A stretch of DNA of 64,000 nt from Dicyema japonicum (taxonomy: Eukaryota; Animalia; Dicyemida), in contig RDEW01000002.1 in the NCBI GenBank assembly GCA_011109175.1, forward strand, positions 136,299-200,298. The letters run 5' to 3'. Each line of letters begins with the position of its first letter. The stretch's first letter is position 1. This document shows positions 8,180-47,540 of the stretch, one piece after another. A program made the position numbers and the translations under genes. The notes below the pieces were generated by a model, which saw nothing but the letters and a program-made list of their open reading frames with translations, had not been told where the DNA came from and made no database searches.

Positions 8180-8512
8180 ATTATTATTATCCACGGATAC
8201 ACCGAGAAAAAAGTTAACAGTAAACAACTAGTTAAGTGTATCCAGTTTCCATTGATACAGAAACAGTCCTTCAACGACACATAAGTTTATCTGGAACCAG
8301 CATAAAAAATAAAAGACCTCCATTCCTTGCAGTTGTGGACACCCCACCAATAGAAAGGGGGAGAGCAAATGATTATTTTTCGTGCCAGCCTGGCACTGGG
8401 AGTCACCTAAGACAGGTGGATCACATAACGCCAATCTAGTAGGAAAGGGAAGGGGTGGAACAGACAAATTAAACATAAATCTTCAACCAACTAGCCACAT
8501 ACCACCACTAGG
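8180..8512 (-). mobile_element. ~330-bp non-autonomous retroelement (RIME-like), copy A
   Basis: Aligns with 15645-15985, 18405-18635 and 47250-47540; 3' GGATACAC..GTGTATCC stem and (TAA)n tail. Confidence 0.8.
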
Positions 8513-9398: not shown

Positions 9399-12059
9399 AT
9401 GCTCAATCATTCGAAAGCTATTTTGCAATTTCGTTGTTGCGCGAGACCAAACTTATTTAGTTCTAGTATGATGAGACCTTCACCCTCAGTATTCGTCAGA
9501 ACTTCTCACGACGGATCCATCAAGCATGCAGAACATGAGATTTATTATCCCTCAAAATACGTGATGGACAAGAGCTACTTGACTTCAATGGAGGAATACA
9601 GGCAAATGTACGAAGAATCCGTAGCAGAACCGGCCAAATTCTGGTCAAAAATAGCCGACCAATTTTATTGGAACACATTCTATCCCAATAGCAAGGCTGA
9701 ATGGAATTTCGACGCCCAAAACGGCCCTATTTTAATAAGCTGGTTCAAAGGAGCCCAGACAAACATGACCTATAACTGCCTGGACAGGCACATTCTAAAA
9801 GGAAACGGTGATAAAACAGTATTTTACTGGTTTATAATAAAATTTGACTTAAGGGAAGGGAATGACCCCAAAGACTCCTCCAAGCTCTCGTATAGTGAGT
9901 TGCACACACGTGTTTGCAAGATGGCCAACGTTCTGAAATCAATGGGTGCGGTATTTTTGATTTTTCTGCGGTTTAACCGCATTTTTGAATGACTCAAACT
10001 TTTAGGGTTAAAGAAAGGAGATGTCGTTTCGCTCTACATGCCCATGATCCCAGAACTGATAGTGGCCATGTTGGCGTGTGCTAGAATTGGCGTTGTACAC
10101 TCAATAATTGTAAGTTTTACTGCTTTACTGTTAGTTTGCTGGGTTTTCGGCTAACTCCCTCTGCGTCAGATTTTTAAGTGCAAAACCAAAATTGGTTATA
10201 ATCGCAGGTTCGTCACACTATCGATAATTTATATATTTTATTGTTTAAACAAATTATAAATTAGTTAAAAGTTAATTTTCTATTATTTTTTAAATTTTCT
10301 AAATTATTTTCTCTAATAATTAATTATTTATTTTTATTATTACAAAATTAATTAATATTTTCTTAGACGGTTTTTGGCGGGGAAATAAAGTAATAAACTT
10401 AAAAAGCATATTAGACGAGGCTCTCCAGCTTTATAGTGAAAAGTTCCCTTTGAAGTGTTATTTTAGGGGATTTTCCGTTGATAAAGTCATTATCAAAGAA
10501 CATTTACAATCATCTGAGTCACGTGGTTCTAACTCTACTGTTTGTGGAATTTGTAATCCAGTACAAAATTAATCCGGGAACTGATGTCTTCTGGGAGGAT
10601 GCAATGTCCCAAGCTAACTCTGCATGTGACCCCGTTTGGCTTGATGCAGAAGATCCCCTCTTTATGCTACATACAAGGTACTCCACACATAAAGTGATCA
10701 TTAGTGGATCCACCGGCGTTCCTAAGGCGATTCTTCACACAATCGGTGGTTATATGCTGTATGTGGCCACTACGTTCAAATATGTCTTCGACTACCACCC
10801 AGATGATATTTACTGGTGCACTGCTGACCTTGGATGGGTTACAGGACACAGTTACATCTGTTATGGTCCTCTTCTTAACTGTGCTTCTCTGTTTTGGTGG
10901 ACTTTGTGATGATGTCATAGTTTGAGGGAGTGATGACGTACCCTGATCCCAGTAGGTTCTGGAAGATCTGCGACAAGTATAACGTGAATCAGTTCTACAC
11001 AGCTCCCACAGCCATTAGGTCCCTGATGGCCTACGGGGATGATTATGTTTTGAAGTAATTGACTATCTTATTGCCAGTAGTAGCACACGTGAGTCCCTCA
11101 GAGTGATCGGCACTGTTGGAGAGCCCATTAACCCAGACGTGTGGGAGTGGTATCATAAAACAGTGGGGAATTCACGCTGTGCTATTGTGGACACTTACTG
11201 GCAGACGGAAACTGTATTTTGGCAGACTGAACCTTAGGGGGGACACATTTTGACTCCTCTCCCCTGTTTCAACACAAAACCCGGCTCAGCTGTAACCCAC
11301 GTGTCAATATTGTAGACCTTACCATTTTTTGGTGTCGTCCCCGCTATTCTTAACGATGAAGGACAAGAATTGGAGGGAAAGGCCGACGGATATTTGGTAG
11401 AGTGATTCATTTGATCTTTAGGCCATAAAACAACCCTGGCCCGGAATGATGAGGAATATATTCGGGAACTATGAGCGATTCAAGAGTACCTATTTTGACC
11501 GGTTTCCTGGCTATTATATCACTGGGGACGGTTTGACACCATCAATAACGTCATAGGAGCTCATAGAGACGATGACGGATATTACTGGATAACAGGACGG
11601 ATAGACGATATGTTGAATGTCTCTGGGCATCTTCTAAGCACTGCAGAGATAGAGGCTGTCCTTGTGCAGCATTCCAGTGTCGTCGAAGCAGCAGCTGTGA
11701 CTGCCCCACACGACATAAAAGGGGAGTGTGTCTACTGTTTTGTTACTCTCCACCAGGTGACTTTTTAAGAGACCTTTAGAATGAAGAATTGACACCAGAG
11801 TTGGTCCAGGAGATCAAAGCGGAAGGTTGTGGGTGTTGATATGCTAGTTCGTAGTACTATTGGGCCTTTTGCTTGCCCTGAGTATGTTCAGATGGCTAAG
11901 TCGATGCCAAAGACCCGCTCTGGGAAGATTATTAGACGGGCTTTGAGGCAGATTGCTAAAGGAGCCACTGACTTTGGTGATTTGTCTTCACTTGCCGACT
12001 TTTCGGTTATTACTGATTTGCAAAATGGACGTGAAGAGCTTTTAAAGAGGATGAGATAA
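9399..12059 (+). CDS. ACSS2: Acetyl-CoA synthetase (ACSS2-like), about 14 exons
   Basis: Spliced motifs [61 protein letters not shown]; mostly 22-27 nt GT-AG introns restore the frame. Confidence 0.95.
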
Positions 12060-12169: not shown

Positions 12170-12480
12170 AGTTTTGTTAAAAGACGTCCACTTCGGTGCT
12201 ACGAAGAACACTAAACGTCCCCAATCGTGGAATACCTTACGGAACGTCACCGGGACTTTCTCAATATGGCAAAGTCCCCTGACCATTTCCTCTGGCCGCA
12301 CTATATTAAACTATATATGGACGCCTGCCCGAGATATGAGAAGAAACCTTCCTCGCTGTGGAGATTAATCCAGGACTCCAAATTTAACCGCAGGAAAAGA
12401 ACTGGTGTGGACACCGGGATCACTTAATTAAACGATAACTTTTATCCTCTTCTAGTGATTTCATGGTTAATAAATTAAAT
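12170..12480 (+). mobile_element. Ingi/Vingi-like LINE 3' end
   Basis: Roughly 85% match to 35520-35660 (minus); ends ACPRYEKKPSSLWRLIQD...VDTGIT*, then a GGATCAC..GTGATTT stem and AATAAA tail. Confidence 0.7.
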
Positions 12481-15420: not shown

Positions 15421-15644
15421 TTTTACATTTAAAAGTGTTCTTCAAAAAAAAATCTAACTAAGTGATCCCAGACCGACAAGGATGAGATCGAAACCGAAGG
15501 GGACAAAAATCTTGAACCACATTTCATTTGGGGCCCGGGGTATTTCATTTCTAGGTTGATTTTTGAAGTATTTAATAGAGGTGTCTTAAAAGGGAATGTT
15601 TAGTTAGTTGGCCGCCCTCACGAAGTTCGTCGTTGGGGAACAAT

Positions 15645-15985
15645 TATTTAATTTATTACCCCCCGGATACACCGGAAAGAAGTTAATGGTAAACAATTAG
15701 TTAAGTGTATCCGGTTTCTACTGTACAGAAACAGAATCCTTCAACGTCACATAAATCCATCCGGAACCAACATAAAAGGTAAAAGATGTTCATTCCTTGC
15801 AGTTGTGGAAACCCCTAGAGTGGATGGGGAGAGAAAATGGTTCCTTTTCGTGCCAGGATGGCTCTGAGCGCCACCTGAGACAGGTGGATCACATGACACC
15901 ATTCTAATAGGAAAGGGAAAAGTAGAAAAAGACAAAATAAACAGGAAACTTTAACCAATTGGCAGCGTGGTGCTACGTGGCTAAA
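15645..15985 (-). mobile_element. ~330-bp non-autonomous retroelement, copy B
   Basis: Aligns with copies A, C and D; lies immediately upstream of the MFSD1 AT-rich tract. Confidence 0.8.
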
Positions 15986-18404: not shown

Positions 18405-18635
18405 TGTCTCTCCCCATTAGTCTAGGTGGCGCTTAGTCCCAGGTCGGCACGAAAAAGGATCATTTGCTCACACTCCACTGGAGGGGTTTCCACAACTACA
18501 AATAATGGACTCCTTTTTATGTTGATTCCGGATGGACTCTGTTTCTGTGGAAGTGGAAACTGGATACACTTAATTAGTTGTTTACTATAACTTTTTTCTG
18601 GGTGTATCCGGCCGGGGTTAATAAATAAAATAATT
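18405..18635 (+). mobile_element. ~330-bp element, copy C (5' part deleted); its 3' end starts the tandem unit
   Basis: ctaggtggcgct...ggatcatt...ctccactggaggggtttccac...ggatacac..gtgtatcc..aataaataaaataa. Confidence 0.8.
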
Positions 18636-18859
18636 AACGTCAGTTAAGAGGGTTTTTTAAACTCGAACAAGGTCACGGATAATCTTGCAATCATGAGAAG
18701 AGCCACATGGTTAGTTTTGCTTTAAATAGATAACACTTTTCTTGAATTTTAACTTTTTTTTATTTTTAGTTTCTTAAGTAATAATTATGTCTATAATTTA
18801 GGCTACTTGAATGGGTAGGTTGTTTTTACTTATTACGTTTGATATCGAAGTCATCCTGT

Positions 18860-18945
18860 TAATATCTGGTGACCTTTTGGATCATTGAATCGATCCGACT
18901 GACTTTGCCGTCAGCTTGTGGACCTATTATTCCCGATGTCTCCAC
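18860..18945 (-). mobile_element. Degenerate CRE RLE fragment in each tandem unit (also ~23030, ~27205, ~31360)
   Basis: VETSGIIGPQADGKVSRIDSMIQKVT matches VETSGILGPQADELVRKIGSMIQAVT at 15250. Confidence 0.7.
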
Positions 18946-19544
18946 ATATTTAATTTTTTTAACTTGCATTATGATGGATTTTATAGAATCAAAAGCGTAG
19001 CATGGTGCACTCCCGACATAAAGAAGATTTTCGTTGATTTCTTCACGTTATACCTATTTACAGTTAATTTAAGATTTCTAATAGTGCAGTAAAACGGTGC
19101 AGACATTAGTGCAATATAGATACGTCGTCACATCGAAATTTATACCAACAAAGTAGTATGCTAACTGATCTATCATGCTTGCTAATAAAAATTCTTTACA
19201 GTTTATGTATGAGCGTGGGAATTTCTACTACTTCTAATTTCAAGTACTTCTTATTAAACTGTGTCGATACTGTCCCACGTTATCACATCCACTTAAAATC
19301 AATGAACAATAAATAAACTATAAATTTGAATATAAAATGAACTGTCCCCATTAAACATAAAAGTAAAAAACTCAAAAAACTTTATTTTACCTAATCTTAG
19401 CACGTCTTAAGACAAAATTTCCTAAAATACACTTAATTCTCTTTAGAACCGAAGCAAATAAACAATATAAAAATAGAAATAATAATCATCGCGGTGTAGC
19501 ACCCAACTCTTCTTCTATAAAAGCAAACATCTCGTATTGCTCCA

Positions 19545-21225
19545 TTAACCTAACTCCATTGGTCGCCTAAAAACAATGTCATAAATTCTTACATTAAAAG
19601 AATGCCGAGCTTCTCTGTCTGATTTCTTCTGCCGATCCCACTCACGTCGCATTTCCGAAGTAACAAAACGTGAGTTCGGAAATACTTCCTTCTTAGGAGC
19701 TCCCAAAATAGATTCCAACAAGTCAGTTGGGTCCAACTTTGAAGTTACTGACGGTTTGAATTCCCTCCTTTCCACCTTACAGGCTTCACTGGAGCACGTG
19801 GTTTTACTTTCTGAAGGTTGTTAGTCTGACTGACAGTAGGAGGGGTGAGGACCATACCAGGCCACGAGATATTTTTGTTGACAGGGTGGTTCACAGGCTG
19901 AAACAAAGTTTCGATGTCATCCTCATCCTCCACAACCTTTTGAATTTCCCGGGTCTTCTTAGGTCGGGGCTCCTTAGGGGGCCTAACTGTGTTTTCCAGC
20001 ACACGTGGCCGAGGAGCACGCGGTCTCGGCTTGGTTTCTATGTATAACTGGTGTAGTCTTACCTTTGGGGTGTTCCTTGACGTAATCAGCCAAATGCTTC
20101 TCAATGACCCGGATTCCCCGTTCGTTCAAATTGTTAGATTTCCCCCCAGAATTCCTATTGCCTTCATCCTATCAATCTCTTCCCCTAAAAAATCAGCTAT
20201 TGGCCTACTTGGGACGTTCTTTAGCATTTTATTTATCAGCTTCTGCTTCCCAGCCGTAGATGGGACCCTCTTCCGCTTCTTGGGTGAGATTATATTGCAC
20301 ATAGCATCAACTCTTTCAGACACTTTAATGAGGGTTTCCTTTATTTGCTTGAATCTACAGTGCACGAGGTAGTGACTGTAGCCATATTTGTTCAGAAAGT
20401 GCTCAAACAAGGTCTATAGATTAAATGGATACTGAACCTGTAGCTTTCTCGCCTGTTCATAGCAATCTGATCCAGGAATGTTGTATGCGTAGCTGTTTGA
20501 GAACAGCAGCTTCATATCACGGACGAAGTCGTTCATATGTCCACAGCTTTCGCTCTATTCCTTATGATGGTGAGGTCTATGGGGGAACAGATGATGGTTG
20601 GGTAGTCAGGGTACTTCTCCAGGTCGACTGGTTTCATAAACGGACGAGTTATATTCTAAACTAAAAATGGCCACAAGACTCGATATTTTTTGTCCAAAAT
20701 CCCCGCCAGAATTTCGAATGGTTTATTTATAACGACTCTCTTGGCCAGTTGGGAGGACTTCTCAAGGACATTTTCCTGACCATATAAAAGACACAAACCT
20801 CGGTAGGCAGTTTGGCTGTCAAGGAGTCGAAATAGACTTTAATTGATCGAGCCAGCTTACAGACTCTCTAAAACTACAAAACTGATGAGAACATCAGTGC
20901 TGGGATTGTATTTCAGGCAATTATCGATCATCAAGTCAAAGTCACTTATGCAGGTAGCAGCGTCTTTATACCAACCATTGGTGAGTCGTTTGGTTATAGA
21001 AGACAAGTCCATTGGATGCTTTATAATGGTGGTGTAATCCTGAGATTAGTTAAGGAATTACTGGAATACACAAAAGAATAGGGTTGATTGTTGTCCTGAA
21101 TGGGTGCGAATGATTGTGATTGATAACAGAGGGAATTATTTCGGACATTAGTATCTTTAGCTTATTGGTGAGGGGTATCGCTTGTCTGGGTCAGGAATTG
21201 TGGAGATATGAATTGGATTATGCAT
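19545..21225 (-). CDS. BET-family bromodomain protein, copy 1 (several 1-bp indels)
   Basis: Same exons as copy 4; indels at ~21175, ~20555, ~20145 and ~19780 may be real or assembly errors. Confidence 0.7.
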
Positions 21226-23715
21226 AAAGTTCTAGTTTTAAATGTCGAAAGTAAACAACTTCACAACGCGTTAAGCTCAGCAAAATATAAATATTTAAAT
21301 TTAATTATAAATAATAAATATAAATTATATATTTTTATAATTTCTATTAAAAGTTGAGTTCTTATTTTCATCGATAAAATATTAGCGAACAAACTTTCCA
21401 CAGATTCTTCCTTGACTTTAAGTACCGTAATTAAGTTCTGATTTGTCTACAATAAGTCAGTATTCAGATTTAGCAGTGTCTTATAAACTAAATTGGCGGA
21501 CATTCCCAAAAGCTCTCTATAGCGGATTAGAATAATTCTGAAAGCTCGCTAAAGATTCATCTTGATGAAACGACTTTAACACCACTCTTATCTGTTTGAA
21601 ATGTAAACATAAACACTTATGCATCAGAGACGGAGATTAAAGAACTTCAACGGACAATTAACTGATAAGAGTGTAATGAGTTCAGGGCTATTAAAGAAAT
21701 CATCCGTAGCATTGTAAGACAAAAAGAAGAAAGATAAATCGCTAATTCAAATCTACGATTTATTGGTCTCCAAAAGCAAAATCCCGTTGGTGGTTCACCT
21801 TAGTTTGATGTAAACCAAACCATTCATCAGTCTTTTCTATCGATCGATCTCAATAATCCGTGCGGTTTTATGAGTGCTGGAGAAATTAGTTCTTGAACAA
21901 TCTACCACAGCTCACTTGATAAGATACTCGACCAAACTAATTCATTTCTGACGGCTCAAATAGTCTTAACCTACTTTCACGGAAAATTCTAACAACAAAA
22001 ATCTTCTTGACGTATATCCATTGTAATCTCAAGTTGTGACTAGTAGACTTTATCAGTGACCACAGAGAACATGTGATATTCAATGTCACCGGTTGAGAAT
22101 GAGATACGGTTGACCTTCATGCTCTAAATCCCCCAACAATACCCTTTGTCGTACATTGACGATAGTTGCATCAAGACAATTATTTTCCTTTATGCAAATT
22201 AATTTAGGATTCAAAGAGCTACCGTTAACTTAACAAGTTTATGATCATTAAGAATGTTCGAGAATTAATGATTCCCCCTATCAGAAACTGATCTTCAACA
22301 ACCAAAGTTCCTACCTTGATAATTTAAGAAACTCATTTAAAGTCAAATTCTTCCTCAAAATATATAATTTTAAGACAACCAACGTGTCTGTACTATTTTC
22401 GGATATTTTCTATTTTTAATTATTTACCCCTGAACCAGATGGCACGAAACTCAAATGCGGACCAAGTTAGTTAGTAAAATGACCCCAGCCTCGCTAACTT
22501 TTAGGAGACCAGCGACTATAAATTAGCACGCAGCAAACACTGGTCACTCCCATAGATCCGTCAGTCTTGGCCTTGTAGATGAGCAGTTTACTAATTACGG
22601 ATATTTAAAAATGTAATTTGGCTTCAACTCGAGAGGTTGAAAAAGAGACAGAGAACATTTTTACCTCATTTAATTTTTTAGGAATTAGCGTGGCGTCATG
22701 CGGTTTACCTATTGTTGGCGCTCAATGGATACACTTAATTAGTTGTTTACTACAACTTCTTTCTGGGTGTATCCGGCCGGGGTTAATAAATAAAATAATT
22801 AAAGTCAGTTAAGAGGGTTTTTTAAAGTCGAACAAGGTCACGGATAATCTTGCAATCATGAGAACAGCCACATGGTTAGTTTTGCTTTAAATAGATAACA
22901 CTTATTCTTGAATTTTAACTTTTTTTTATTTTAGTTTCTTAAGTAATAATTATGTCTATAATTTAGGCTACTTGAATGGGTAGGTAGTTTTTACCTATTA
23001 CGTTTGATATCGAAGTCATCCTGTTAAATATCTGGTGACCTCTTGGATCATTAAATCGATCCGACTGACTTTGCCGTCAGCTTGTGGACCTATTATTCCC
23101 GATGTCTCCACATATTTAATTTTTTTTAACTTGCATTATGATGGATTTTATGAGAATCAAAAGCGTAGCATGGTGCACTCCCGACATAAAAAAGATTTCC
23201 GTTGATTTCTTCACGTTAGACCTATTTACAGTTAATTTAAAATTTCTAATAGTGCAGTAAAACGGTGCAGACATTAGTGCAATATAGATACGTCGTCACA
23301 TCGAAATTTATACCAACAAAGTAGTATGCTAACTGATCTATCATGCTTGCTAATAAAAATTCTTTACCAGTTTATGTATGAGCGTGGGAATTTCTACTAC
23401 TTCTAATTTCTCAAGTACTTCATATTAAACTGTGTCGATACTGTCCCACGTTATCACATCCACTTAAAATCAATGAACAATAAATAAACTATAAATTTGA
23501 ATATAAAATGAACTATCCCCATTAAACATAAAAGTAAAAAACTCAAAAAACTTTATTTTACCTGATCTTAGCACGTCTTAAGACAAAATTTCCTAAAATA
23601 CACTTAATTCTCTTTAGAACCGAAGCAAATAAACAATATAAAAATAGAAATAATAATCATCGCGGTGTAGCACCCAACTCTTCTTCGATAAAAGCAAACA
23701 TCTCGTATTGCTCCA

Positions 23716-25399
23716 TTAACCTAACTCCATTGGTCGCCTAAAAACAATGTCATAATTCTTACATTAAAGGAATGCCGAGCTTCTCTGTCTGATTTCTTCT
23801 GCCGATCCCACTCACGTCGCATTTCCGAAGTAACAAAACGTGAGTTCGGAAATACTTCCTTCTTAGGAGCTCCCAAAATAGATTCCAACAAGTCAGTTGG
23901 GTCCAACTTTGAAGTTACTGACGGTTTGAATTCCCTCCTTTCCACCTTACAAGGCTTCACTGGAGCACGTGGTTTTTACTTTCTGAAGATTGTTGGTCTG
24001 ACTGACAGTAGGAGGGGTGAGGACCATACCAGGCCACGAGATATTTTTGTTAACAGGGTGGTTCACAGGCTGAAACAAAGTTTCGATGTCATCCTCATCC
24101 TCCACAACCTTTTGAATTTCCCGGGTCTTCTTAAGTCGGGGCTCCCTAGGGGGCCTAACTGTGTTCTCCAGCACACGTGGCCGAGGAGCACGCGGTCTCG
24201 GCTTGGTTTCTATGCATAACTGATGTAGTCTTACCTTTGGGGTGTTCCTTGACGTAATCAGCCAAATGTTTCTCAATGACCCGGATTCCCCGTTCGTTCA
24301 AATTGTTAGATTTCCCCCCCAGAATTCCTATTGCCTTCATCCTATCAATCTCTTCCCCTAAAAAATCAGCTATTGGCCTACTTGGGACGTTCTTTAGCAT
24401 TTTATTTATCAGCTTCTGCTTCCCAGCCGTAGATTGGACCCTCTTCCGCTTCTTGGGTGAGATTATATTGCACATAGCATCAACTCTTTCAGACACTTTA
24501 ATGAGGGTTTCCTTTATTTGCTTGAATCTACAGTGCACGAGGTAGTGACTGTAGCCATATTTGTTCAGAAAGTGCTCAAACAAGGTCTATAGATTAAATG
24601 GATACTGAACCTGTAGCTTTCTCGCCTGTTCATAGCAATCTGATCCAGGAATGTTGTATGCGTAGCTGTTTGAGAACAGCAGCTTCATATCACGGACGAA
24701 GTCGTTCATATGTCCACAGCTTTCGGCTCTATTTCCTTATGATGGTGAGGTCTATGGGGGAACAGATGATGGTTGGGTAATCAGGGTACTTCTCCAGGTC
24801 GACTGGTTTCATAAACGGACGAGTTATATTCTAAACTAAAAATGGCCACAAGACTCGATATTTTTGTCCAAAATGCCCGCCAGAATTTCGAATGGTTTAT
24901 TTATAACGACTCTCTTGGCCAGTTGGGAGGACTTTTCAAGGACATTTTCCTGACCATATAAAAGACACAAACCTCGGTAGGCAGTTTGGCCGTCAAGGAG
25001 TCGAAATAGACTTTAATTGATCGAGCCAGCTTACAGACTCTCTAAAACTACAAAACTGATGAGAACATCAGTGCTGGGATTGTATTTCAGACAATTATCG
25101 ATCATCAAATCAAAGTCACTTATGCAGGTAGCAGCGTCTTTATACCAACCATTGGTGAGTCGTTTGGTTATAGAAGACAAGTCCATTGGATGCTTTATAA
25201 TGGTGGTGTAATCCTGAGATTAGTTAAGGAATTACTGGAATACACAAAAGAATAGGGTTGATTGTGGTCCTGAATGGGTGCGAATGATTGTGATTGATAA
25301 CAGAGGGAATTATTTCGGACATTAGTATCTTTAGCTTATTGGTGAGGGGTATCGCTTGTCTGGGTCAGGAATTGTGGAGATATGAATTGGATTATGCAT
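23716..25399 (-). CDS. BET-family bromodomain protein, copy 2 (several 1-bp indels)
   Basis: Same exons as copy 4; indels at ~25349, ~24732, ~23975 and ~23755. Confidence 0.7.
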
Positions 25400-27874
25400 A
25401 AAGTTCTAGTTTTAAATGTCGAAAGTAAACAACTTCACAACGCGTTAAGCTCAGCAAAATATAAATATTTAAATTTAATTATTAATAATAAATATAAATT
25501 ATATATTTTTATAATTTCTATTAAAAGTTGAGTTCTTATTTTCATCGATCAAATATTAGCGAACAAACTTTCCACAGATTCTTCCTTGACTTTAAGTACC
25601 GTAATTAAGTTCTGATTTGTCTACAATAAGTCAGTATTCAGATTTAGCAGTGTCTTATAAACTAAATTGGCGGACATTCCCAAAAGCTCTCTATAGCGGA
25701 TTAGAATAATTCTGAAAGCTCGCTAAAGATTCATCTTGATGAAACGACTTTAACACCACTCTTATCTGTTTGACATGTAAACATAAACACTTATGCATCA
25801 GAGAAGGAGATTAAAGAACTTCAACAGACAATTAACTGATAAGAGTGTAATGAGCTCAGAGCTATTAAAGAAATCATCCGTAGCATTGTAAGACAAAAAG
25901 AAGAAAGATAAATCGCTAATTCAAATCTACGATTTATTGGTCTCCAAAAGCAAAATCCCGTCGGTGGTTCACCTTAGTTTGATGTAAACCAAACCATTCA
26001 TCAGTCTTTTCTATCGATCGATCTCAATAATCCGTGCGGTTTCATGAGTGCTGGAGAAATTAGTTCTTGGAACAATCTACCACAGCTCACTTGATAAGAT
26101 ACTCGACCAAACTAATTCATTTCTGAAGGCTCAAATAGTCTTAACCTACTTTCACGGAAAATTCTAACAACAAAAATCTTCTTGACGTCTATCCATTGTA
26201 ATCTCAAGTCGTGACTGGTAGACTTTATCAGTGACCACAGAGAACATGTGATATTCAATGTCACCGGTTGAGAATGAGATACGGTTGACCTTCATGCTCT
26301 AAATCCCCCAACAATACCCTTTGTCGTACATTGACGATAGTTGCATCAAGACAATTATTTTCCTTTATGCGAATTAATTTAGGATTCAAAGAGCTACCGT
26401 TAACTTAACAAGTTTATGATCATTAAGAATGTTCGAGAATTAATGATTCCCCCTATCAGAAACTGATCTTCAACAACCAAAGTTCCTACCTTGATAATTT
26501 AAGAAACTCATTTAAAGTCAAATTCTTCCTCAAAATATTTAATTTTAAGACAACCAACGTGTCTGTACTATTTTCGGATATTTTCTATTTTTAATTATTT
26601 ACCCCTGAACCAGGTGGCACGAAACTCAAATGCGGACCAAGTTAGTTAGTTAAGTAACTGCAGCCTCGCTAACTTTTAGGAGACCAGCGACTATAAAGTA
26701 GTACGCAGCAAACACTCGTCACTACCATAGATCCGTCAGTCTTGGCCTTGTAGACGAGCAGTTTACTAATTACGGATATTTAAAAATGTGATTTGGCTTC
26801 AACTCGAGAGGTTGAAAAAAAGACAGAGAACATCTTTTACCTAATTTAATTTTTTTAGGAATTAGCGTGGCGTCATGCGGTTCACCTATCGTTGGCGCTC
26901 AAATGGATACACTTAATTAGTTGTTTACTATAACTTCTTTCTGGGTGTATCCGGCCGGGGTTAATAAATAAAATAATTAAAGTCAGTTAAGAGGGTTTTT
27001 TAAAGTCGAACAAGGTCACGGATAATCTTGCAATCATGAGAACAGCCACATGGTTAGTTTTGCTTTAAATAGATAACACTTTTCTTGAATTTTAACTTTT
27101 TTTTATTTTTAGTTTCTTAAGTAATAATTATGTCTATAATTTAGGCTACTTGAATGGGTAGGTTGTTTTTACCTATTACGTTTGATATCGAAGTCATCCT
27201 GTTAATATCTGGTGACCTTTTGGATCATTGAATCGATCCGACTGACTTTGCCGTCAGCTTGTGGACCTATTATTCCCGATGTCTCCACATATTTAATTTT
27301 TTTCAACTTGCATTATGATGGATTTCATAAGAATCAAAAGCGTAGCATGGTGCACTCCCGACATAAAGAAGATTTCTGTTGATTTCTTCACGTTAGACCT
27401 ATTTACAGTTAATTTAAGATTTCTAATAGTGCAGTAAAACGGTGCAGACATTAGTGCAATATAGATACGTCGTCACATCGAAATTTATACCAACAAAGTA
27501 GTATGCTAACTGATCTATCATGCTTGCTAATAAAAATTCTTTATCAGTTTATGTATGAGCGTGGGAATTTCTACTACTTCTAAATTCTCAAGTACTTCTA
27601 TTAAACTGTGTCAATACTGTCCCACGTTATCACATCCACTTCAAATCAATGAACAATAAACTATAAAATGAACTGTCCCATTAAACATAAAAGTAAAAAA
27701 CTCAAAAAACTTTATTTTACCTAATCTTAGCACGTCTTAACACAAAATTTCCTAAAATACACTTAATTCTCTTTAGAACCGAAGCAAATAAACAATATAA
27801 AAATAGAAATAATAATCATCGCGGTGTAGCACCCAACTCTTCTTCGATAAAAGCAAACATCTCGTATTGCTCCA

Positions 27875-29557
27875 TTAACCTAACTCCATTGGTCGCCTAA
27901 AAACAATGTCATAAATTCTTACATTAAAGGAATGCCGAGCTTCTCTGTCTGATTTCTTCTGCCGATCCCACTCACGTCGCATTTCCGAAGTAACAAAACG
28001 TGAGTTCGGAAATACTTCCTTCTTAGGAGCTCCCAAAATAGATTCCAACAAGTCAGTTGGGTCCAACTTTGAAGTTACTGACGGTTTGAATTCCCTCCTT
28101 TCCACCTTACAAGGCTTCACTGGAGCACGTGGTTTTACTTTCTGAAGATTGTTGGTCTGACTGACAGTAGGAGGGGTGAGGACCATACCAGGCCACGAGA
28201 TATTTTTGTTGACAGGGTGGTTCACAGGCTGAAACAAAGTTTCGATGTCATCCTCATCCTCCACAACCTTTTGAATTTCCCGGGTCTTCTTAGGTCGGGG
28301 CTCCTTAGGGGGCCTAACTGTGTTCTCCAGCACACGTGGCCGAGGAGCACGAGGTCTCGGCTTGGTTTCTATGCATAACTGGTGTAGTCTTACCTTTGGG
28401 GTGTTCCTTGACGTAATCAGCCAAATGCTTCTCAATAACCCGGATTCCCCGTTCGTTCAAATTGTTAGATTTCCCCCCAGAATTCCTATTGCCTTCATCC
28501 TATCAATCTCTTCCCCTAAGAAATCAGCTATTGGCATACTTGGGACGTTCTTTAGCATTTTATTTATCAGCTTCTGCTTCCCAGCCGTAGATGGGACCCT
28601 CTTCCGCTTCTTGGGTGAGATTATATTGCACATAGCATCAACTCTTTCAGACACTTTAATGAGGTTTTCCTTTATTTGCTTGAATCTACAGTGCACGAGG
28701 TAGTGACTGTAGCCATATTTGTTCAGAAAGTGCTCAAACAAGGTCTATGGATTAAAAGGATACTGAACCTGTAGCTTTCTCGCCTGTTCATAGCAATCTG
28801 ATCCAGGAATGTTGTATGCGTAGCTGTTTGAGAACAGCAGCTTCATATCACGGACGAAGTCGTTCATATGTCCACAGCTTTCAGCTCTATTCCTTATGAT
28901 GGTGAGGTCTATGGGGGAACAGATGATGGTTGGGTAGTCAGGGTACTTCTCCAGGTCGACTGGTTTCATAAACGGACGAGTTATATTCTAAACTAAAAAT
29001 GGCCAAAAGACTCGATATTTTTTGTCCAAAATGCCCGCCAGAATTTCGAATGGTTTATTTATAACGACTCTCTTGGCCAGTTGGGAGGACTTTTCAAGGA
29101 CATTTTCCTGACCATATAAAAGACACAAACCTCGGTAGGCAGTTTGGCTGTCAAGGAGTCGAAATAGACTTTAATTGATCGAGCCAGCTTACAGACTCTC
29201 TAAAACTACAAAACTGATGAGAACATCAGTGCTGGGATTGTATTTCAGGCAATTATCGATCATCAAGTCAAAGTCACTTATGCAGGTAGCAGCGTCTTTA
29301 TACCAACCATTGGTGAGTCGTTTGGTTATAGAAGACAAGTCCATTGGATGCTTTATAATGGTGGTGTAATCCTGAGATTAGTTAAGGAATTACTGGAATA
29401 CACAAAAGAATAGGGTTGATTGTTGTCCTGAATGGGTGCGAATGATTGTGATTGATAACAGAGGGAATTATTTCGGACATTAGTATCTTTAGCTTATTGG
29501 TGAGGGGGTATCGCTTGTTGGGTCAGGAATTGTGGAGATATGAATTGGATTATGCAT
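27875..29557 (-). CDS. BET-family bromodomain protein, copy 3 (one homopolymer indel)
   Basis: Intact except C6 instead of C7 at ~28475. Confidence 0.8.
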
Positions 29558-32028
29558 AAAGTTCTAGTTTTAAATGTCGAAAGTAAACAACTTCACAACG
29601 CGTTAAGCTCAGCAAAATATAAATATTTAAATTTAATTATTAATAATAAATATAAATTATATATTTTTATAATTTCTATTAAAAGTTGAGTTCTTATTTT
29701 CATCGATAAAATATTAGCGAACAAACTTTCCACAGATTCTTCCTTGACTTTAAGTACCATAATTAAGTTCTGATTTGTCTACAATAAGTCAGTATTCAGA
29801 TTTAGCAGTTTGTTATGAACTAAATTGGCGGACATACCCAAAAGCTCTCTATAGCGGATTAGAATAATTCTGAAAGCTCGCTAAAAATTCATCTTGATGA
29901 AACGACTTTAACACCACTCCTATCTGTTTGACATGTAAACATAAACACTTATGCATCAGAGAAGGAGATTAAAGAACTTCAACAGACAATTAACTGATAA
30001 GAGTGTAATGAGTTCAGAGTTATTAAAGAAATCATCCGTAGCATTGTAAGAAAAAAAGAAGAAAGATAAATTGCTAATTCAAATCTACGATTTATTGGTC
30101 TCCAAAAGCAAAATCCCGTCGGTGGTTCACTTTAGTTTGATGTGAACCAAACCATTCATCAGTCTTTTCTATCGATCGATCTCAATAATCCGTGCGGTTT
30201 CATGAGTGCTGGAGAAATTAGTTCTTAGAACAATCTACCACAGCTCACTTGATAAGATACTCGACCAAACTAATTCATTTCTGACGGCTCAAATAGTCTT
30301 AACTTACTTTCACGGAAAATTCTAACAACAAAAATCTTCTTGACATCTATCCATTGTAATCTCAAGTCGTGACTGGTAGACTTTATCAGTGACCACAGAG
30401 AACATGTGATATTCAATGTCACCGGTTGAGAATGAGATACGGTTGACTTTCATGCGCTAAATCCACCAACAATACCCTTTGTCGTACATTGACGATAGTT
30501 GCATCAAGACAATTATTTTCCTTTATGCGAATTAATTTAGGATTCAAAGAGCTACCGTTAACTTAACAAGTTTATGATCATTAAGAATGTTCGAGAATTA
30601 ATGATTCCCCCTATCAGAAACTGATTTTCAACAACCAAAGTTCCTACCTTGATAATTTAAGAAACTCATTTAAAGTCAAATTCTTCCTCAAAATATATAA
30701 TTCTAAGACAACCAACGTGTCTGTACTATTTTCGGATATTTTCTATTTTTAATTATTTACCCCTGAACCAGGTGGCACGGAACTCAAATGCGGACCAAGT
30801 TAGTTAGTTAAGTAACCCCAGCCTCGCTAACTTTTAGGAGACCAGCGACTATAAAGTAGTACGCAGCAAACACTGGTCACTCCCATAGATCCGTCAGTCT
30901 TGGCCTTGTAGATGAGCAGTTTACTAATTACGGATATTTAAAAATGTAATTTGGCTTCAACTCGAGAGGTTGAAAAAGAGACAGAGAACATTTTTACCTC
31001 ATTTAATTTTTAGGAATTAGCGTGGCGTCATGCGGTTTACCTATTGTTGGCGCTCAATGGATACACTTAATTAGTTGTTTACTATAACTTCTTTCTGGGT
31101 GTATCCGGCCGGGGTTAATAAATAAAATAATTAAAGTCAGTTAAGAGGGTTTTTTAAAGTCGAACAAGGTCACGGATAATCTTGCAATCATGAGAACAGC
31201 CACATGGTTAGTTTTGCTTTAAATAGATAACACTTTTCTTGAATTTTAACTTTTTTTTATTTTTAGTTTCTTAAGTAATAATTATGTCTATAATTTAGGC
31301 TACTTGACTGAGTAGGTTGTTTCTGCCTATTACGTTTGATATCGAAGTCATCCTGTTAATATCTGGTGACCTCTTGGATCATTGAATCGATCCGACTGAC
31401 TTTGCCGTCAGCTTGTGGACTATTATTCCCGATGTCTCCACATATTTAATTTTTTTAACTTGCATTATGATGGATTTTATGAGAATCAAAAGCGTAGCAT
31501 GGTGCACTCCCGACATAAAGAAGATTTCCGTTGATTTCTTCACGTTAGACCTATTTACAGTTAATTTAAGATTTCTAATAGTGCAGTAAAACGGTGCAGA
31601 CATTAGTGCAATATAGATACGTCGTCACATCGAAATTTATACCAACAAAGTAGTATGCTAACTGATCTATCATGCTTGCTAATAAAAATTCTTTACCAGT
31701 TTATGTATGAGCGTGGCAATTTCTACTACTTCTAAATTTCTCAAGTACTTCTATTAAACTGTGTCAATACTGTCCCACGTTATCACATCCACTTCAAATC
31801 AATGAACAATAAACTATAAAATGAACTGTCCCCATTAAACATAAAAGTAAAAAACTCAAAAAACTTTATTTTACCTAATCTTAGCACGTCTTAAGACAAA
31901 ATTTCCTAAAATACACTTAATTCTCTTTAGAACCGAAGCAAATAAACAATATAAAAATAGAAATAATAATCATCGCGGTGTAGCACCCAACTCTTCTTCG
32001 ATAAAAGCAAACATCTCGTATTGCTCCA

Positions 32029-33713
32029 TTAACCTAACTCCATTGGTCGCCTAAAAACAATCTTATAAATTCTTACATTAAAGGAATGCCGAGCTTCTCT
32101 GTCTGATTTCTTCTGCCGATCCCACTCACGTCGCATTTCCGAAGTAACAAAACGTGAGTTCGGTAATACTTCCTTCTTAGGAGCTCCCAAAATAGATTCC
32201 AACAAGTCAGTTGGGTCCAACTTTGAAGTTACTGACGGTTTGAATTCCCTCTTTTCCACCTTACAAGGCTTCACTGGAGCACGTGGTTTTACTTTCTGAA
32301 GGTTGTTGGTCTGACTGACAGTAGGAGGGGTGAGGACCATACCAGGCCACGAGATATTTTTGTTAACAGGGTGGTTCACAGGCTGAAACAAAGTTTCGAT
32401 GTCATCCTCATCCTCCACAACCTTTTGAATTTCCCGGGTCTTCTTAGGTCGGGGCTCCTTAGGGGGCCTAACTGTGTTCTCCAGCACACGTGGCCGAGGA
32501 GCACGCGGTCTCGGCTTGGTTTCTATGCATAACTGGTGTAGTCTTACCTTTGGGGTGTTCCTTGACGTAATCAGCCAAATGCTTCTCAATAACCCGGATT
32601 CCCCGTTCGTTCAAATTGTTAGATTTCCCCCCCAGAATTCCTATTGCCTTCATCCTATCAATCTCTTCCCCTAAAAAATCAGCTATTGGCCTACTTGGGA
32701 CGTTCTTTAGCATTTTATTTATCAGCTTCTGCTTCCCAGCCGTAGATGGGACCCTCTTCCGCTTCTTGGGTGAGATTATATTGCACATAGTATCAACTCT
32801 TTCAGACACTTTAATAAGGGTTTCCTTTATTTGCTTGAATCTACAGTGCACGAGGTAGTGACTGTAGCCATATTTGTTCAGAAAGTGCTCAAACAAGGTC
32901 TATAGATTAAAAGGATACTGAACCTGTAGCTTTCTCGCCTGTTCATAGCAATCTGATCCAGGAATGTTGTATGCGTAGCTGTTTGAGAACAGCAGCTTCA
33001 TATCACGGACGAAGTCGTTCATATGTCCACAGCTTTCGGCTCTATTCCTTATGATGGTGAGGTCTATGGGGGAACAGATGATGGTTGGGTAGTCAGGGTA
33101 CTTCTCCAGGTCGACTGGTTTCATAAACGGACGAGTTATATTCTAAACTAAAAATGGCCACAAGACTCGATATTTTTTGTCCAAAATCCCCGCCAGAATT
33201 TCGAATGGTTTATTTATAACGACTCTCTTGGCCAGTTGGGAGGACTTTTCAAGGACATTTTCCTGACCATATAAAAGACACAAACCTCGGTAGGCAGTTT
33301 GGCTGTCAAGGAGTCGAAATAGACTTTAATTGATCGAGCCAGCTTACAGACTCTCTAAAACTACAAAACTGATGAGAACATCAGTGCTGGGATTGTATTT
33401 CAGACAATTATCGATCATCAAGTCAAAGTCACTTATGCAGGTAGCAGCGTCTTTATACCAACCATTGGTGAGTCGTTTGGTTATAGAAGACAAGTCCATT
33501 GGATGCTTTATAATGGTGGTGTAATCCTGAGATTAGTTAAGGAATTACTGGAATACACAAAAGAATAGGGTTGATTGTTGTCCTGAATGGGTGCGAATGA
33601 TTGTGATTGATAACAGAGGGAATTATTTCGGACATTAGTATCTTTAGCTTATTGGTGAGGGGGTATCGCTTGTCTGGGTCGGGAATTGTGGATATATGAA
33701 TTGGATTATGCAT
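32029..33713 (-). CDS. BET-family (BRD2/3/4, fsh-like) protein, copy 4, intact, ~513 aa, 7 exons
   Basis: BD1 TNKLKIL..HPF..LCIP/DYTTIIKHPMDL..NCLKYN..LPTE; BD2 RPFMKPVD..PDY..FSNSYAYN..ARKLQ/TLFE; ET-like helices; six 22-25 nt introns (143 nt total) leave 1542 nt in frame. Confidence 0.9.
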
Positions 33714-35499
33714 AAAGTTCTAGTTTTAAATGTCGAAAGTAAACAACTTCACAACGCGTTAAGCTCAGCAAAATATAAATATTTAAATTTAATTTTTAAT
33801 AATAAATATAAATTATATATTTTTATAATTTCTATTAAAAGTTGAGTTCTTATTTCCATCGATCAAATATTAGCGAACAAAATTTCCACAGATTCTTCCT
33901 TGACTTTAAGTACCGTAATTAAGTTCTGATTTGTCTACAATAAGTCAGTATTCAGATTTAGCAGTGTCTTATAAACTAAATTGGCGGACATTCCCAAAAG
34001 CTCTCTATAGCGGATTAGAATAATTCTGAAAGCTCGCTAAAGATTCATCTTGATGAAACGACTTTAACACCACTCTTATCTGTTTGACATGTAAACATAA
34101 ACACTTATGCATCAGAGAAGGAGATTAAAGAACTTCAACAGACAATTAACTGATAAGAGTGTAATGAGCTCAGAGCTATTAAAGAAATCATCCGTAACAT
34201 TGTAAGACAAAAAGAAGAAAGATGAATCGCTAATTCAAATCTACGATTTATTGGTCTCCAAAAGCAAAATCCCGTTGGTGGTTCACCTTAGTTTGATGTA
34301 AACCAAACCATTCATCAGTCTTTTCTATCGATCGATCTCAATAATCCGTGCGGTTTCATGAGTGCTGGAGAAATTAGTTCTTGGAACAATCTACCACAGC
34401 TCACTTGATAAGATACTCGACCAAACTAATTTATTTCTGACGGCTCAAATAGTCTTAACCTAATTTCACGGAAAATTCTAACAACAAAAATCTTTTTGAC
34501 GTCTATCCATTCTAATCTCAAGTCTGACTGGTAGACTTTATCAGTGACCACAGAGAACATGTGATATTCAATGTCACCGGTTGAGAATGAGATAGGGTTG
34601 ACCTTCATGCGCTAAATCCACCAACAATACCCTTTGTCGTACATTGACGATAGTTGCATCAAGACAATTATTTTCCTTTATGCGAATTAATTTAGGATTC
34701 AAAGAGCTACCGTTAACTTAACAAGTTTATGATCATTAAGAATGTTCGAGAATTAATGATTCCCCCTATCAGAAACTGATTTTCAACAACCAAAGTTCCT
34801 ACCTTGATAATTTAAGAAACTCATTTAAAGTCAAATTCTTCCTCAAAATATATAATTCTAAGACAACCAACGTGTCTGTACTATTTTCGGATATTTTCTA
34901 TTTTTAATTATTTACCCCTGAACCAGGTGGCACGAAACTCAAATGCGGACCAAGTTAGTTAGTTAAATAACCCCAGCCTCGCTAACTTTTAGGAGACCAG
35001 CGACTATAAAGTAGTACGCAGCAAACACTGGTCACTCCCATAGATCCGTCAGTCTTGGCCTTGTAGATGAGCAGTTTACTAATTACGGATATTTAAAAAT
35101 GTAATTTGGCTTCAACTCGAGAGGTTGAAAAAGAGACAGAGAACATTTTTTACCTCATTTAATTTTTTAGGAATTAGCGTGGCGTCATGCGGTTTACCTA
35201 TTGTTGGCGCTCAATGTAAGTTCTGCATGAAAAAGGACCGTTCTACATTCCCTACTCTTCTACGTCCTTCAGAGAAGTAGCCTACCGAGGTGTTATTATT
35301 GTTAACCCCAGCCTTACAATAGTAGCCCAGCACAAAAACTCATAACGAATTAATCATCGCCTCACGGGTGGGATCTGTATGATGAGAATTGACCTTCGCT
35401 GAAAACTCCACCTTTCGGATTCAAAGCAACGACCTTCAGATCCGATGTCATCAGACGTGAGGCAAAAGGCCTTGGATCAATAGAAAAGATTATCAGACG

Positions 35500-35860
35500 T
35501 TCAAGCAAAAGCCGTGGAAAAGAGATAAAAGTTATCGTCTAATTAAGTGATCCCAGTGTCCATACCAGTCTTTTTCTCGCGGTTAGTTTTGGGGTCCTGG
35601 ATTAATCTCCACAGCGGGGAAGGTTTCTTCTCATATCTCGGACAGGCGTCCATATATAGTCTGATGCCCGTATTTCTTTTCATGGTGAGGTATACGTCAC
35701 TACATGTGACTTTCCTGGTGATATATTCAGACGATTCTCCAGGAACTAAAGACCCATCAGGTTTAGTAGATCTTGCACTGACTGTGTAGCCTCCTCGATT
35801 CTTCGATGTTTCGAGATCATCCGCATACGATAAAAGAATTGTGTTTTTGGTGGTTGGGGA
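35500..35860 (-). mobile_element. Ingi/Vingi-like LINE fragment (RT fused to 3' end)
   Basis: LLSYADDL, NRLNISPGKS, then the same 3' end as 12300-12440. Confidence 0.7.
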
Positions 35861-35957: not shown

Positions 35958-36912
35958 ATGCGGCATCTAGCAGTCCTTTCACGTATTCTCCACAACCGAA
36001 TATCAAATAATATAAAAGTAAAAATAATTAATTAGTAGAATTATAAATCAAATCAACCAACAAAAAGATATTTGGTATTTAAATATATGGTACTTAGAGT
36101 AAACGAAACACGACGGATGATGAAGCATTTGGGGTATCTAAATTTAAATATTTTAGCCCACTTGGCGTTCTGTAACAATTACGGGAATTGTGGGCCTTAC
36201 GGTCTTTGGGATATTTTATTATATCAACGAAAAAGAAAAAAAGGGTATAAATTGATTAATCTCTTAGAGAAGCTGAGAAATCGGTATAAAAGCCTAGGGA
36301 AGATGGCTTTGGGAGGCGACTATGAACTTATTAATCACAACAACGTGAAAGTCACAAATAAAGACTTTCTTGGACACTGGATTGTCCTTTATTTTGGATT
36401 CTGCCACTGTCCTGATATTTGCCACGAGGAATTGGAAAAATTGGTGGAAGGACTCAAAATTATTGGTCCCCCTTTTGATTAATCCAGACAACTCCCCAAG
36501 ACGGCTTATGAAGCTGCGAAGGACCAATTTAAAGAGACCAGTTGTATGGCCGGTCTTCATTTCTATTGACCCCGACCGAGACACCGTGGAAGTCGTCAAA
36601 GACTACGTCCAAGGTTATCTTGTGGTTTACCAGAGACTTTTCTTCCCATGGTTGGGTTGACGGGATCTCAGGAGCAGGTGGCTACGGCTGCTAAGGCCTT
36701 CCGTGTGTATTATAGTAAGGGACCAATGGATGAAGATGGAGACTATATAGTAACTGTGGTTTGATAATTTGTAGGTCGACCATTCTATTGTGATGTACTT
36801 GGTGGACCCAGATGGCAATTTTGTGGATTTTTATGGAAGAGAGAGAACGAGTAGTGACCTTGCTAGCGGCATTATTAAGCATATGGAGGAATACGACCAA
36901 CTTGAGGACTAG
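35958..36912 (+). CDS. SCO1: Cytochrome c oxidase assembly copper chaperone SCO1/SCO2
   Basis: Arg-rich presequence, TM ([13 protein letters not shown]), [15 protein letters not shown] (CxxxC), [30 protein letters not shown]. Confidence 0.92.
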
Positions 36913-38332: not shown

Positions 38333-39256
38333 ATGTCTCATCAATCAAAACTGACTGCATTCATCACCAAGGTTTGCTGGCTTGTCAATTTTTTTCTAGA
38401 AAGAATACAATAAAGAAGCTCCCTCATTTGAGGATAATAAATTAGCTGGTGAGATGAAGCTCCTTGATAAACAGACATTTCAACTAATATCTCACATGGG
38501 TCCCACATGGTTTAAAGAACTAAAAGATGAATTTAAAAAGGATTACTTTGTTGCTGTAAATAATTATTTTTTATAATTAAAGTTATCAAAATTCGTATTC
38601 GAAGAGCGAAAAATTAATGTAATATATCCTACCCCTGAGAATGTGTTTTCGTTTAGTCGCCACAGTCCAATCGACAAGATCAAAGTCGTTATCCTTGGAC
38701 AAGATCCTTACCATGGTGAAGGCCAGGCCCACGGACTTTCATTTAGCGTAGGAAAATCTGTCTCGTTCCCCCCAAGGCAGTCTTTGGCTTGATTTTAGTC
38801 TTACAAACATATTCAAGGAACTCTCGTCCGATATTCCTGGATTTAAGACTCCTCGTCACGGCTGCCTTGAAAGATGGGCTACCCAAGGTTGAGAAGTCTT
38901 TCAAGGAACTTTACAGGTGTTTTACTGCTTAATGCCGTCCTTACTGTGCGGAAAGGTCAGCCAAATTCCCACAAAGATCATGGCTGGGAGTCATTCACGG
39001 ACGCCATAATAAAATGGTTAAATAAAAACAGGACTGGACTCGTATTTATGCTGTGGGGGAATTATGCTCAGAAGAAAGGATCGTCGATAGATAAAGTATT
39101 TTGAATCTCCCACGCTAGAATAAGCATTTAGTACTTCGATCAGCCCACCCTTCTCCCTTTTCTGCTACTAAATTTTTCGGCTGCAAACATTTTTCTAAGG
39201 CGAATGAATATCTGAAAAGTAACGGGAAGGTTGAAATTGACTGGTCCTTTGATTAA
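38333..39256 (+). CDS. UNG: Uracil-DNA glycosylase (family 1)
   Basis: N-terminal PIP-like QSKLTAF; GQDPYH, AHGLSFS, GVLLLN, LWG, AHPSPFS; five micro-introns. Confidence 0.96.
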
Positions 39257-47210: not shown

Positions 47211-47249
47211 GGACGCAGTCCATTTTTAAATTATAATTTAATTTAATTA

Positions 47250-47540
47250 AATAATTTATTAACCACGGATACACCGAGAAAAAATTTAAAGTAAACAACT
47301 AATTAAGTGTATCCAGTTTCCACTTCTACAGATACAGAGTACATCCGGAATCAGCATAAAGGGTAAGACGTCCATACTTGCAGTTGTGGAAACCCCTCCA
47401 GTGGAGTGGGGGAGAGCAATTGATCCTTTTTTATGTCAGCCAGGCACTGGGCGCCACCTAGACAGGTGGATCACATGACGCCACTCTAATAGGAAGAAAG
47501 AGGAGGAACAGAAAACTTCAACCAATTAGCCACGTGGCTC
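47250..47540 (-). mobile_element. ~330-bp non-autonomous retroelement, copy D
   Basis: Aligns with copies A-C. Confidence 0.8.
47421..47482 (-). ncRNA. Candidate HDV-like double-pseudoknot RNA motif
   Basis: GGCGTC-ATG-TGATCC-ACC-TGTCTA-GGT-GGCGCC-(P4 region)-AAAAA-GGATCA; pairing covaries across copies; L3/P1.1 non-canonical. Confidence 0.4.

Follow-up and report, generated by a model that had tools for sequence, protein, structure and literature searches.

The tandem array and the gene it carries

A stretch of 64,000 nucleotides from the dicyemid Dicyema japonicum (assembly GCA_011109175.1, contig RDEW01000002.1, positions 136,299 to 200,298 of the forward strand), referred to below as the window, was analysed for a gene with two bromodomains that occurs there in four tandem copies. 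Self-BLAST and a repeat search of the 64-kb window revealed that positions 18561-35216 consist of four head-to-tail units (U1 to U4) of 4154-4178 bp each. At an offset of one unit, positions 22726-35216 matched 18561-31059 over 12.5 kb with 97.9% identity, the second and third offsets being as expected, and 300-nt probes each returned four copies with a start-to-start spacing of 4152-4178 bp. An alignment of the four units by MAFFT displayed pairwise identities of 98.2-98.5% over ungapped columns, and contained 125 substitution columns and 28 indel events. Self-BLAST, repeat search and alignment thus bore out the four head-to-tail units of ~4.16 kb that the original prediction, made by a model from the letters of this DNA, had proposed.

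The unit junction given in that prediction, ctcaa/tggatac, is present in the sequence, and the three internal junctions are identical (..gcgctcaa/tggatac..). The array terminates with 2 bp (TG) of a fifth unit and is flanked by unique DNA within one contig, and no N occurs anywhere in the window. Tandem Repeats Finder did not report the array, because the longest period of that program (500) is shorter than the unit. Each unit is made up of ~1.5 kb of upstream DNA, a 1.74-kb gene and ~0.9 kb of downstream DNA. The 2.4 kb of non-genic unit DNA was found to contain no long open reading frame (ORF), no Rfam family and no constraint, as judged by ORF, RNA-family and substitution-density checks. 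Two CACGTG palindromes are present in every unit, both in exon 7 (at 32280 and 32487 in U4, with equivalents in U1-U3), and none was observed in the 2.4 kb of non-genic DNA. The features of the array, in window coordinates, are as follows.

18561-35216, no strand: whole array, four units plus the TG of a fifth (self-BLAST, four-copy families)
18561-22725, no strand: U1, 4165 bp (unit alignment)
22726-26903, no strand: U2, 4178 bp (unit alignment)
26904-31057, no strand: U3, 4154 bp, with a 16-bp deletion common to U3 and U4 (unit alignment)
31058-35216, no strand: U4, 4159 bp, its final TG being microhomology with the unit start (junction and end sequences)
33714-35216, minus strand: upstream DNA of 1.5 kb, present in every unit and presumed to carry the promoter; highest substitution density of the unit
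19486-21225, minus strand: gene copy 1, with four one-base deletions, in exon 1 (~21171, C5 to C4), exon 5 (~20551), exon 6 (~20141, G7 to G6) and exon 7 (~19781)
23657-25399, minus strand: gene copy 2, with frameshifts in exon 1 (~25345, C5 to C4), exon 4 (~24861, A6 to A5), exon 5 (~24733, +A) and exon 7 (~23973, +A)
27816-29557, minus strand: gene copy 3, with two one-base deletions, in exon 1 (~29519, codon 14, not in a homopolymer) and exon 6 (~28472, G7 to G6)
31970-33713, minus strand: gene copy 4, intact (ORF and exon reading, Pfam)
33713-33549, 33526-33352 and 33323-33286, minus strand: exons 1-3 of copy 4
33262-33149 (or to 33167), minus strand: exon 4 of copy 4
33121 (or 33142)-32924, minus strand: exon 5 of copy 4
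32899-32548 and 32522-32077, minus strand: exons 6 and 7 of copy 4
32050-31970, minus strand: optional exon 8 of copy 4; with the last intron unspliced, translation stops at 32029

The gene of U4 lies on the minus strand, with its ATG at 33713, and comprises seven or eight exons, with introns of 22-28 nt between them. Retention of the last intron (32076-32051) results in seven exons and a product of 511 aa, while its removal results in eight exons and 522 aa; across models, the encoded protein ranges from 511 to 523 aa. Very short introns, together with a GC content of 36.7%, have been reported for D. japonicum (PMC6736024), and the window has a GC content of 37.0%. All exons and splice sites of this minus-strand gene are kept in 4/4 units, consistent with the full gene of seven exons predicted for each unit, with an eighth exon as an alternative.

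Two mutually exclusive in-frame solutions, both kept in 4/4 units, were found for intron 4 (33122-33166). A GT..AG intron of 24 nt (33166-33143) yields ..KKYR-NITRPFM-KPVD and places RPF in the second bromodomain, and a GT..TG intron of 27 nt (33148-33122) yields ..KKYRVLWPFL-KPVD and places WPF there, so that both options supply an xPFx-KPVD motif. The canonical GT..AG intron was taken as the default, and an obligatory GT..TG intron was dropped, as a canonical alternative exists. From the sequence, this duality could be due to alternative splicing that swaps WPF for RPF, or it could be a relic of intron sliding.

The reading frame of U4 is intact and reads through to the stop, and four one-base frameshifts are present in each of copies 1 and 2; in both respects the copies are as had been predicted. 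Copy 3, to which a single homopolymer indel had been attributed, was found to carry two frameshifts, one of which is outside any homopolymer. This exon 1 loss falls in coding DNA, since the stretch concerned aligns to the N-terminus of the first bromodomain (BD1) of BET proteins. Of the ten frameshifting events, eight are deletions, and nine make a run of identical bases longer or shorter.

Domain content of the encoded protein

Pfam searches identified a bromodomain (PF00439) in exon 2 (E 2.2e-14, 53.6 bits) and a second one in exon 5 (E 4.1e-15, 56-63 bits), and no domain beyond these two in the gene product. No second bromodomain gene was found elsewhere in the 64-kb window. The coding parts of the two domains in copy 4 are as follows.

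33286-33713, minus strand: BD1, exons 1-3; BET BD1-type, with an N-terminal TNxLxxL helix and HPF replacing WPF
32924-33262, minus strand: second bromodomain (BD2), exons 4-5 (Pfam and PDB sequence search)

The two tandem bromodomains lie in the N-terminal half of the protein, and in these domains, in their order and in the match of BD1 the product resembles the BET family (BRD2/3/4/T, Drosophila fs(1)h, C. elegans bet-1, yeast Bdf1/2). When exon 2 was compared with PDB sequences, the best single-domain matches were BD1 of BRDT, BRD3 and BRD4 (E 4e-13 to 5e-11). The alignment of exon 1 was weak (E 0.3-1), with 33 of the 34 listed matches being BET bromodomain entries and the second-ranked match a TAF1 chain. 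Exon 1 is colinear with the BD1 N-termini of BRD4 and BRD2, including the TNxLxxL start of the first helix (helix Z). Exon 5 matched TAF1 BD2, BRDT and BRD2 at similar E-values, and BD2 of the array gene is therefore as near to TAF1 BD2 as to BET domains. Furthermore, the Tyr and Asn positions that anchor acetyl-lysine are kept in the sequences of both bromodomains, and a PKKRKRV-like basic patch, resembling a nuclear localization signal, follows BD2; both features are shared with BET proteins.

The array gene differs from the BET family in its HPF, in a length of 511-523 aa only, and in that no ET domain was detected. Pfam returned no match to the ET domain (PF17035) at E<=1 in exon 6 or 7, no BET chain was present among the PDB sequence matches at E<=10 in the search for this domain, and exon 6 had 0 relatives in 1.84 billion representative proteins. 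A single-sequence AlphaFold model of exon 6 had a predicted local distance difference test score of 46.6, which is too low to be used. Fast evolution could hide an ET remnant. The linker between BD1 and BD2 is long in BRD4, fs(1)h and Bdf1, whereas the DY..II..P.DL motifs of the two array bromodomains lie 118 residues apart, which leaves a linker of ~10 residues. This start-to-start spacing of ~118 residues is closer to that of TAF1 and tighter than that of BET proteins.

As the ET domain, a defining feature of the family that follows BD2, was looked for and not detected, the gene is labelled here as BET-like; judged by its sequence, it would be an unproven BET member, with a BD1 type and domain order that fit the family. 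Of the BET chromatin-reader gene originally predicted, the double bromodomain and the BET-type BD1 were recovered, while the lack of a detectable ET domain and the almost adjacent bromodomains do not conform to it. The product is predicted to be a compact nuclear acetyl-lysine reader with two nearly adjacent bromodomains. Neither the exon 7 ORF nor the BD2 exon had a match in a protein set of 5.8 billion clusters, exact-protein look-ups of two ORFs of the window returned no record, and a 26-mer spanning the junction had 0 matches in metagenome contigs.

Substitutions and frameshifts in the four copies

The density of substitutions among the units was 18.5 per kb in coding DNA, compared with 37.1 per kb in non-coding DNA (Fisher p 5e-4). 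Coding changes were concentrated at third codon positions (22/29) and were mainly synonymous (20 synonymous to 9 non-synonymous; binomial p 7.5e-8), with a ratio of non-synonymous to synonymous polymorphism (pN/pS) of 0.13. Between pairs of units, synonymous divergence (dS) was 0.030-0.043, the ratio of non-synonymous to synonymous divergence (dN/dS) 0.06-0.16 and non-coding divergence 1.7-2.2%, in keeping with the recent amplification that had been proposed. The predicted proteins differ by 3-6 residues per pair. Transitions outnumbered transversions by 79 to 46, an excess that represents a biological spectrum. The codon pattern, dN/dS and transition excess show that the substitutions are real differences between distinct DNA copies under protein-level selection, and all four copies were thereby shown to have been under purifying selection since they separated. 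Such selection fits a retained, possibly dosage-raising array.

The frameshifted copies are included in this pattern. The lowest dN/dS values (0.06-0.08) were obtained for pairs that include U1, the most damaged copy, and changes private to the three frameshifted copies comprised 12 synonymous and 6 non-synonymous ones (p 0.0014); the relaxed constraint expected of disrupted copies (dN/dS near 1) was not observed. The indels behave differently, being equally dense in coding and non-coding DNA, with a corrected count of 8 coding and 20 non-coding sites. If indels were selected like non-synonymous changes, 2.4 coding sites would be expected versus the 8 found (P ~0.004, by hand arithmetic on the corrected counts). 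The test had originally been run with 9 coding sites versus 2.3 expected (P 6e-4), and one of these nine lies in intron 7. In the non-coding DNA of the array, indels and substitutions occur at a ratio of ~1:5, at which ten neutral frameshifts predict ~50 neutral coding substitutions, compared with the six private non-synonymous changes of the broken copies. A picture of one intact copy accompanied by progressively decayed ones is probably wrong, as the frameshifts do not follow the selection seen in the substitutions.

The indels are most simply read as largely technical, the frameshifts most likely being long-read consensus errors in a repeat beyond the reach of short-read polishing. This fits the published D. 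japonicum assembly, if the window belongs to it: for pooled animals, an assembly of Illumina data (Platanus) was merged with one of PacBio RS II data (Falcon), and the publication mentions no polishing step (PMC6736024). An array of 16.6 kb of 98% identical units would have to stem from the long-read side. Going by their sequences, all four copies would be, or would very recently have been, functional. We consider it probable, although well short of certain, that the locus represents a young tandem duplication with four functional, selected copies, in which the frameshifts of copies 1-3 are mostly consensus errors.

Several observations weigh against this interpretation. SCO1, the uracil-DNA glycosylase gene UNG and the inspected parts of the acetyl-CoA synthetase (ACS) gene, all of which flank the array, read cleanly through their mini-introns upon hand inspection, showing that the assembly is not error-prone throughout; the error explanation therefore needs a repeat-specific cause, and a consensus error specific to the repeat is plausible. 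The frameshift in exon 1 of copy 3 is not in a homopolymer, and the substitution counts per copy are small. Pairwise divergence of ~2% is near the reported heterozygosity of 1.24%, so that some copies could be alleles. In addition, we infer how many copies there are, that they are expressed and that the frameshifts are errors.

The accuracy of the flanking single-copy genes, which lack comparable frameshifts and so attest to a correct assembly at least in unique DNA, is also what would be expected if the frameshifts were real and the array were a decaying remnant, with one live gene (copy 4), three young pseudogenes and no dosage effect. Such an account would explain why copies 1, 2 and 3 carry 4, 4 and 2 frameshifts and copy 4 none, and it would readily accommodate the lesion outside any homopolymer. 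It is difficult to reconcile, however, with the synonymous bias of private changes in precisely those copies and with the low dN/dS against copy 1, and the ~50 neutral coding substitutions that it implies should be mostly non-synonymous. The equal density of coding and non-coding indels is, moreover, what technical error would give. We regard real pseudogenes as unlikely, while retaining them as the foremost alternative.

Allelic variation in a functional gene would likewise be biased towards synonymous changes, and selection is thus also compatible with a copy number inflated by the assembler, in which two or three real units and their allelic versions were threaded through a repeat loop of the assembly graph. 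Distances are similar for all pairs of units (1.7-2.2% in non-coding DNA) and come close to the heterozygosity of 1.24% published for DNA from pooled animals; the pipeline described there involved both the merging of two assemblies and HaploMerger (PMC6736024). Conversely, the three identical novel junctions, the absence of N, the unique flanks and the single contig are not readily obtained in this way, as haplotype stacking normally leads to two copies at a contig join and not to a regular array. The PacBio reads reached 65 kb, long enough to cover 16.6 kb (PMC6736024), and the units do not pair into alleles, the patterns U1+U3 versus U2+U4 and U1+U4 versus U2+U3 being in the minority. An inflated copy number is accordingly doubtful, and slightly more so than pseudogenization.

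That the locus is single-copy is very unlikely, given that its unique flanks enclose the same novel junction three times over, together with four sequences that can be told apart and bear a signature of selection. A wholly artefactual array at such a locus is hardly credible. It might result, for instance, from long-read or assembly read-through of an extrachromosomal circle of this segment, as extrachromosomal circular DNAs have been reported for Dicyema and circular contigs can mimic direct repeats (PMC6543705). However, 125 substitution sites with a selection signature could not stem from fewer than four different templates, unique DNA borders the array on both sides, and the reported circles are mostly <2 kb and non-coding (PMC6543705).

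Surroundings, origin and related systems

Genes on the plus strand are located on both sides of the array: the ACS gene and a gene for an MFS-type transporter to the left, and SCO1 (36117-36912) and UNG (38454-39256) to the right. In UNG, a 22-nt GC..AG intron at 38777-38798 is needed to join ..SFPP to SLTNIFKEL, as no GT donor fits. The ACS gene contains one AT-rich intron of ~170 nt (10207-10377), between ..KLVIIA and DGFWRGNK.., its other introns being ~24 nt. A pair of inverted repeats of 143 bp, 91.6% identical, is located at 12310-12451 and 35520-35660, with one arm 300 bp to the right of the array end; these are probably two copies of a small mobile element. One further feature touches the array itself.

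18420-18646, minus strand: short repeat derived from a long interspersed nuclear element (LINE), spanning the left breakpoint, with its last 86 bp alone inside each unit (self-BLAST)

Other copies of this LINE-derived repeat are present at 8184-8474, 15642-15913 and 47234-47540, the four copies being 77-83% identical, and nothing resembling it was found at the right end of the array. Homologous exchange between flanking repeats was rejected as the origin of the array: the LINE-derived repeat is present at the left breakpoint only, and the first duplication therefore did not occur by such an exchange.

The TG at the array end indicates that the founding junction had 2 bp of microhomology. The 4.16-kb segment would first have been duplicated via a non-homologous junction with this TG microhomology, the left breakpoint lying inside the LINE-derived repeat. 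A rapid expansion to about four copies may have followed, with unequal exchange or replication slippage between units as its probable mechanism. At 106 of the 125 variable sites the variant is private to a single unit (23-29 sites per unit), and the other 19 are shared two-and-two, comprising ten that separate U1+U2 from U3+U4, five that separate U1+U3 from U2+U4 and four that separate U1+U4 from U2+U3. The ten U1+U2 versus U3+U4 sites are clustered at 31736-31814 and 34611-34858, along with the 16-bp indel. With all unit pairs about equally distant, this near-star variation points to rapid growth to four units, after which the units drifted independently and underwent little gene conversion.

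The near-star pattern and the single reused junction would also allow, without requiring it, a simultaneous origin of the four units, for instance if a 4.16-kb circle was copied by a rolling-circle mechanism and re-inserted, extrachromosomal circles having been reported for this animal. This would be part of a wider amplification of chromatin readers in dicyemids that is perhaps tied to chromatin diminution or polyploid cells. We consider this scenario improbable. The array is an ordinary, young case of a chromatin-reader gene duplicated in tandem, and events of this kind are well known. Since the same 1.5 kb precedes the start codon in each unit, transcription is expected to be similar for all copies, and the near-identity of the predicted proteins, which differ at so few residues, makes raised dosage the likely effect, as opposed to new function.

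If the copy number is real, four copies of an acetyl-lysine reader are maintained under selection in a genome of only ~5,000 genes, which suggests that the reader is needed at high dosage and offers a handle on dicyemid chromatin biology. For annotation, the locus serves as a warning that repeated genes in this assembly can look broken while their substitutions indicate maintenance. The most useful result is methodological, as selected substitutions set against unselected indels provide a read-free way of spotting falsely broken repeated genes.

Compared with false duplications in assemblies, such as stacked haplotypes or long-read repeats left unpolished, the array is alike in its near-identical adjacent copies, its divergence near heterozygosity and its one-base indels that ignore coding constraint. 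It differs from them in that its joins are free of gaps and of N, its three junctions are identical and precise, and its four sequences can be told apart. Young tandem segmental duplications of Drosophila, nematodes and vertebrates, in which unequal exchange follows a first step mediated by microhomology, share with the array the head-to-tail units, one reused junction, unique flanks and 2-bp microhomology. They are also alike in that a breakpoint falls in the remnant of a transposon, every unit includes a complete gene along with its upstream DNA, and divergence is ~2%. The array differs from these in its near-star variation, suggestive of a burst over stepwise growth, and in showing no sign of later homogenization by gene conversion. 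Among amplified families of chromatin readers, the HP1 paralogues of Drosophila are comparable in that a small reader gene was duplicated at the DNA level under protein-level selection; the array copies are far younger and nearly identical, and dosage is for them a likelier outcome than diversification.

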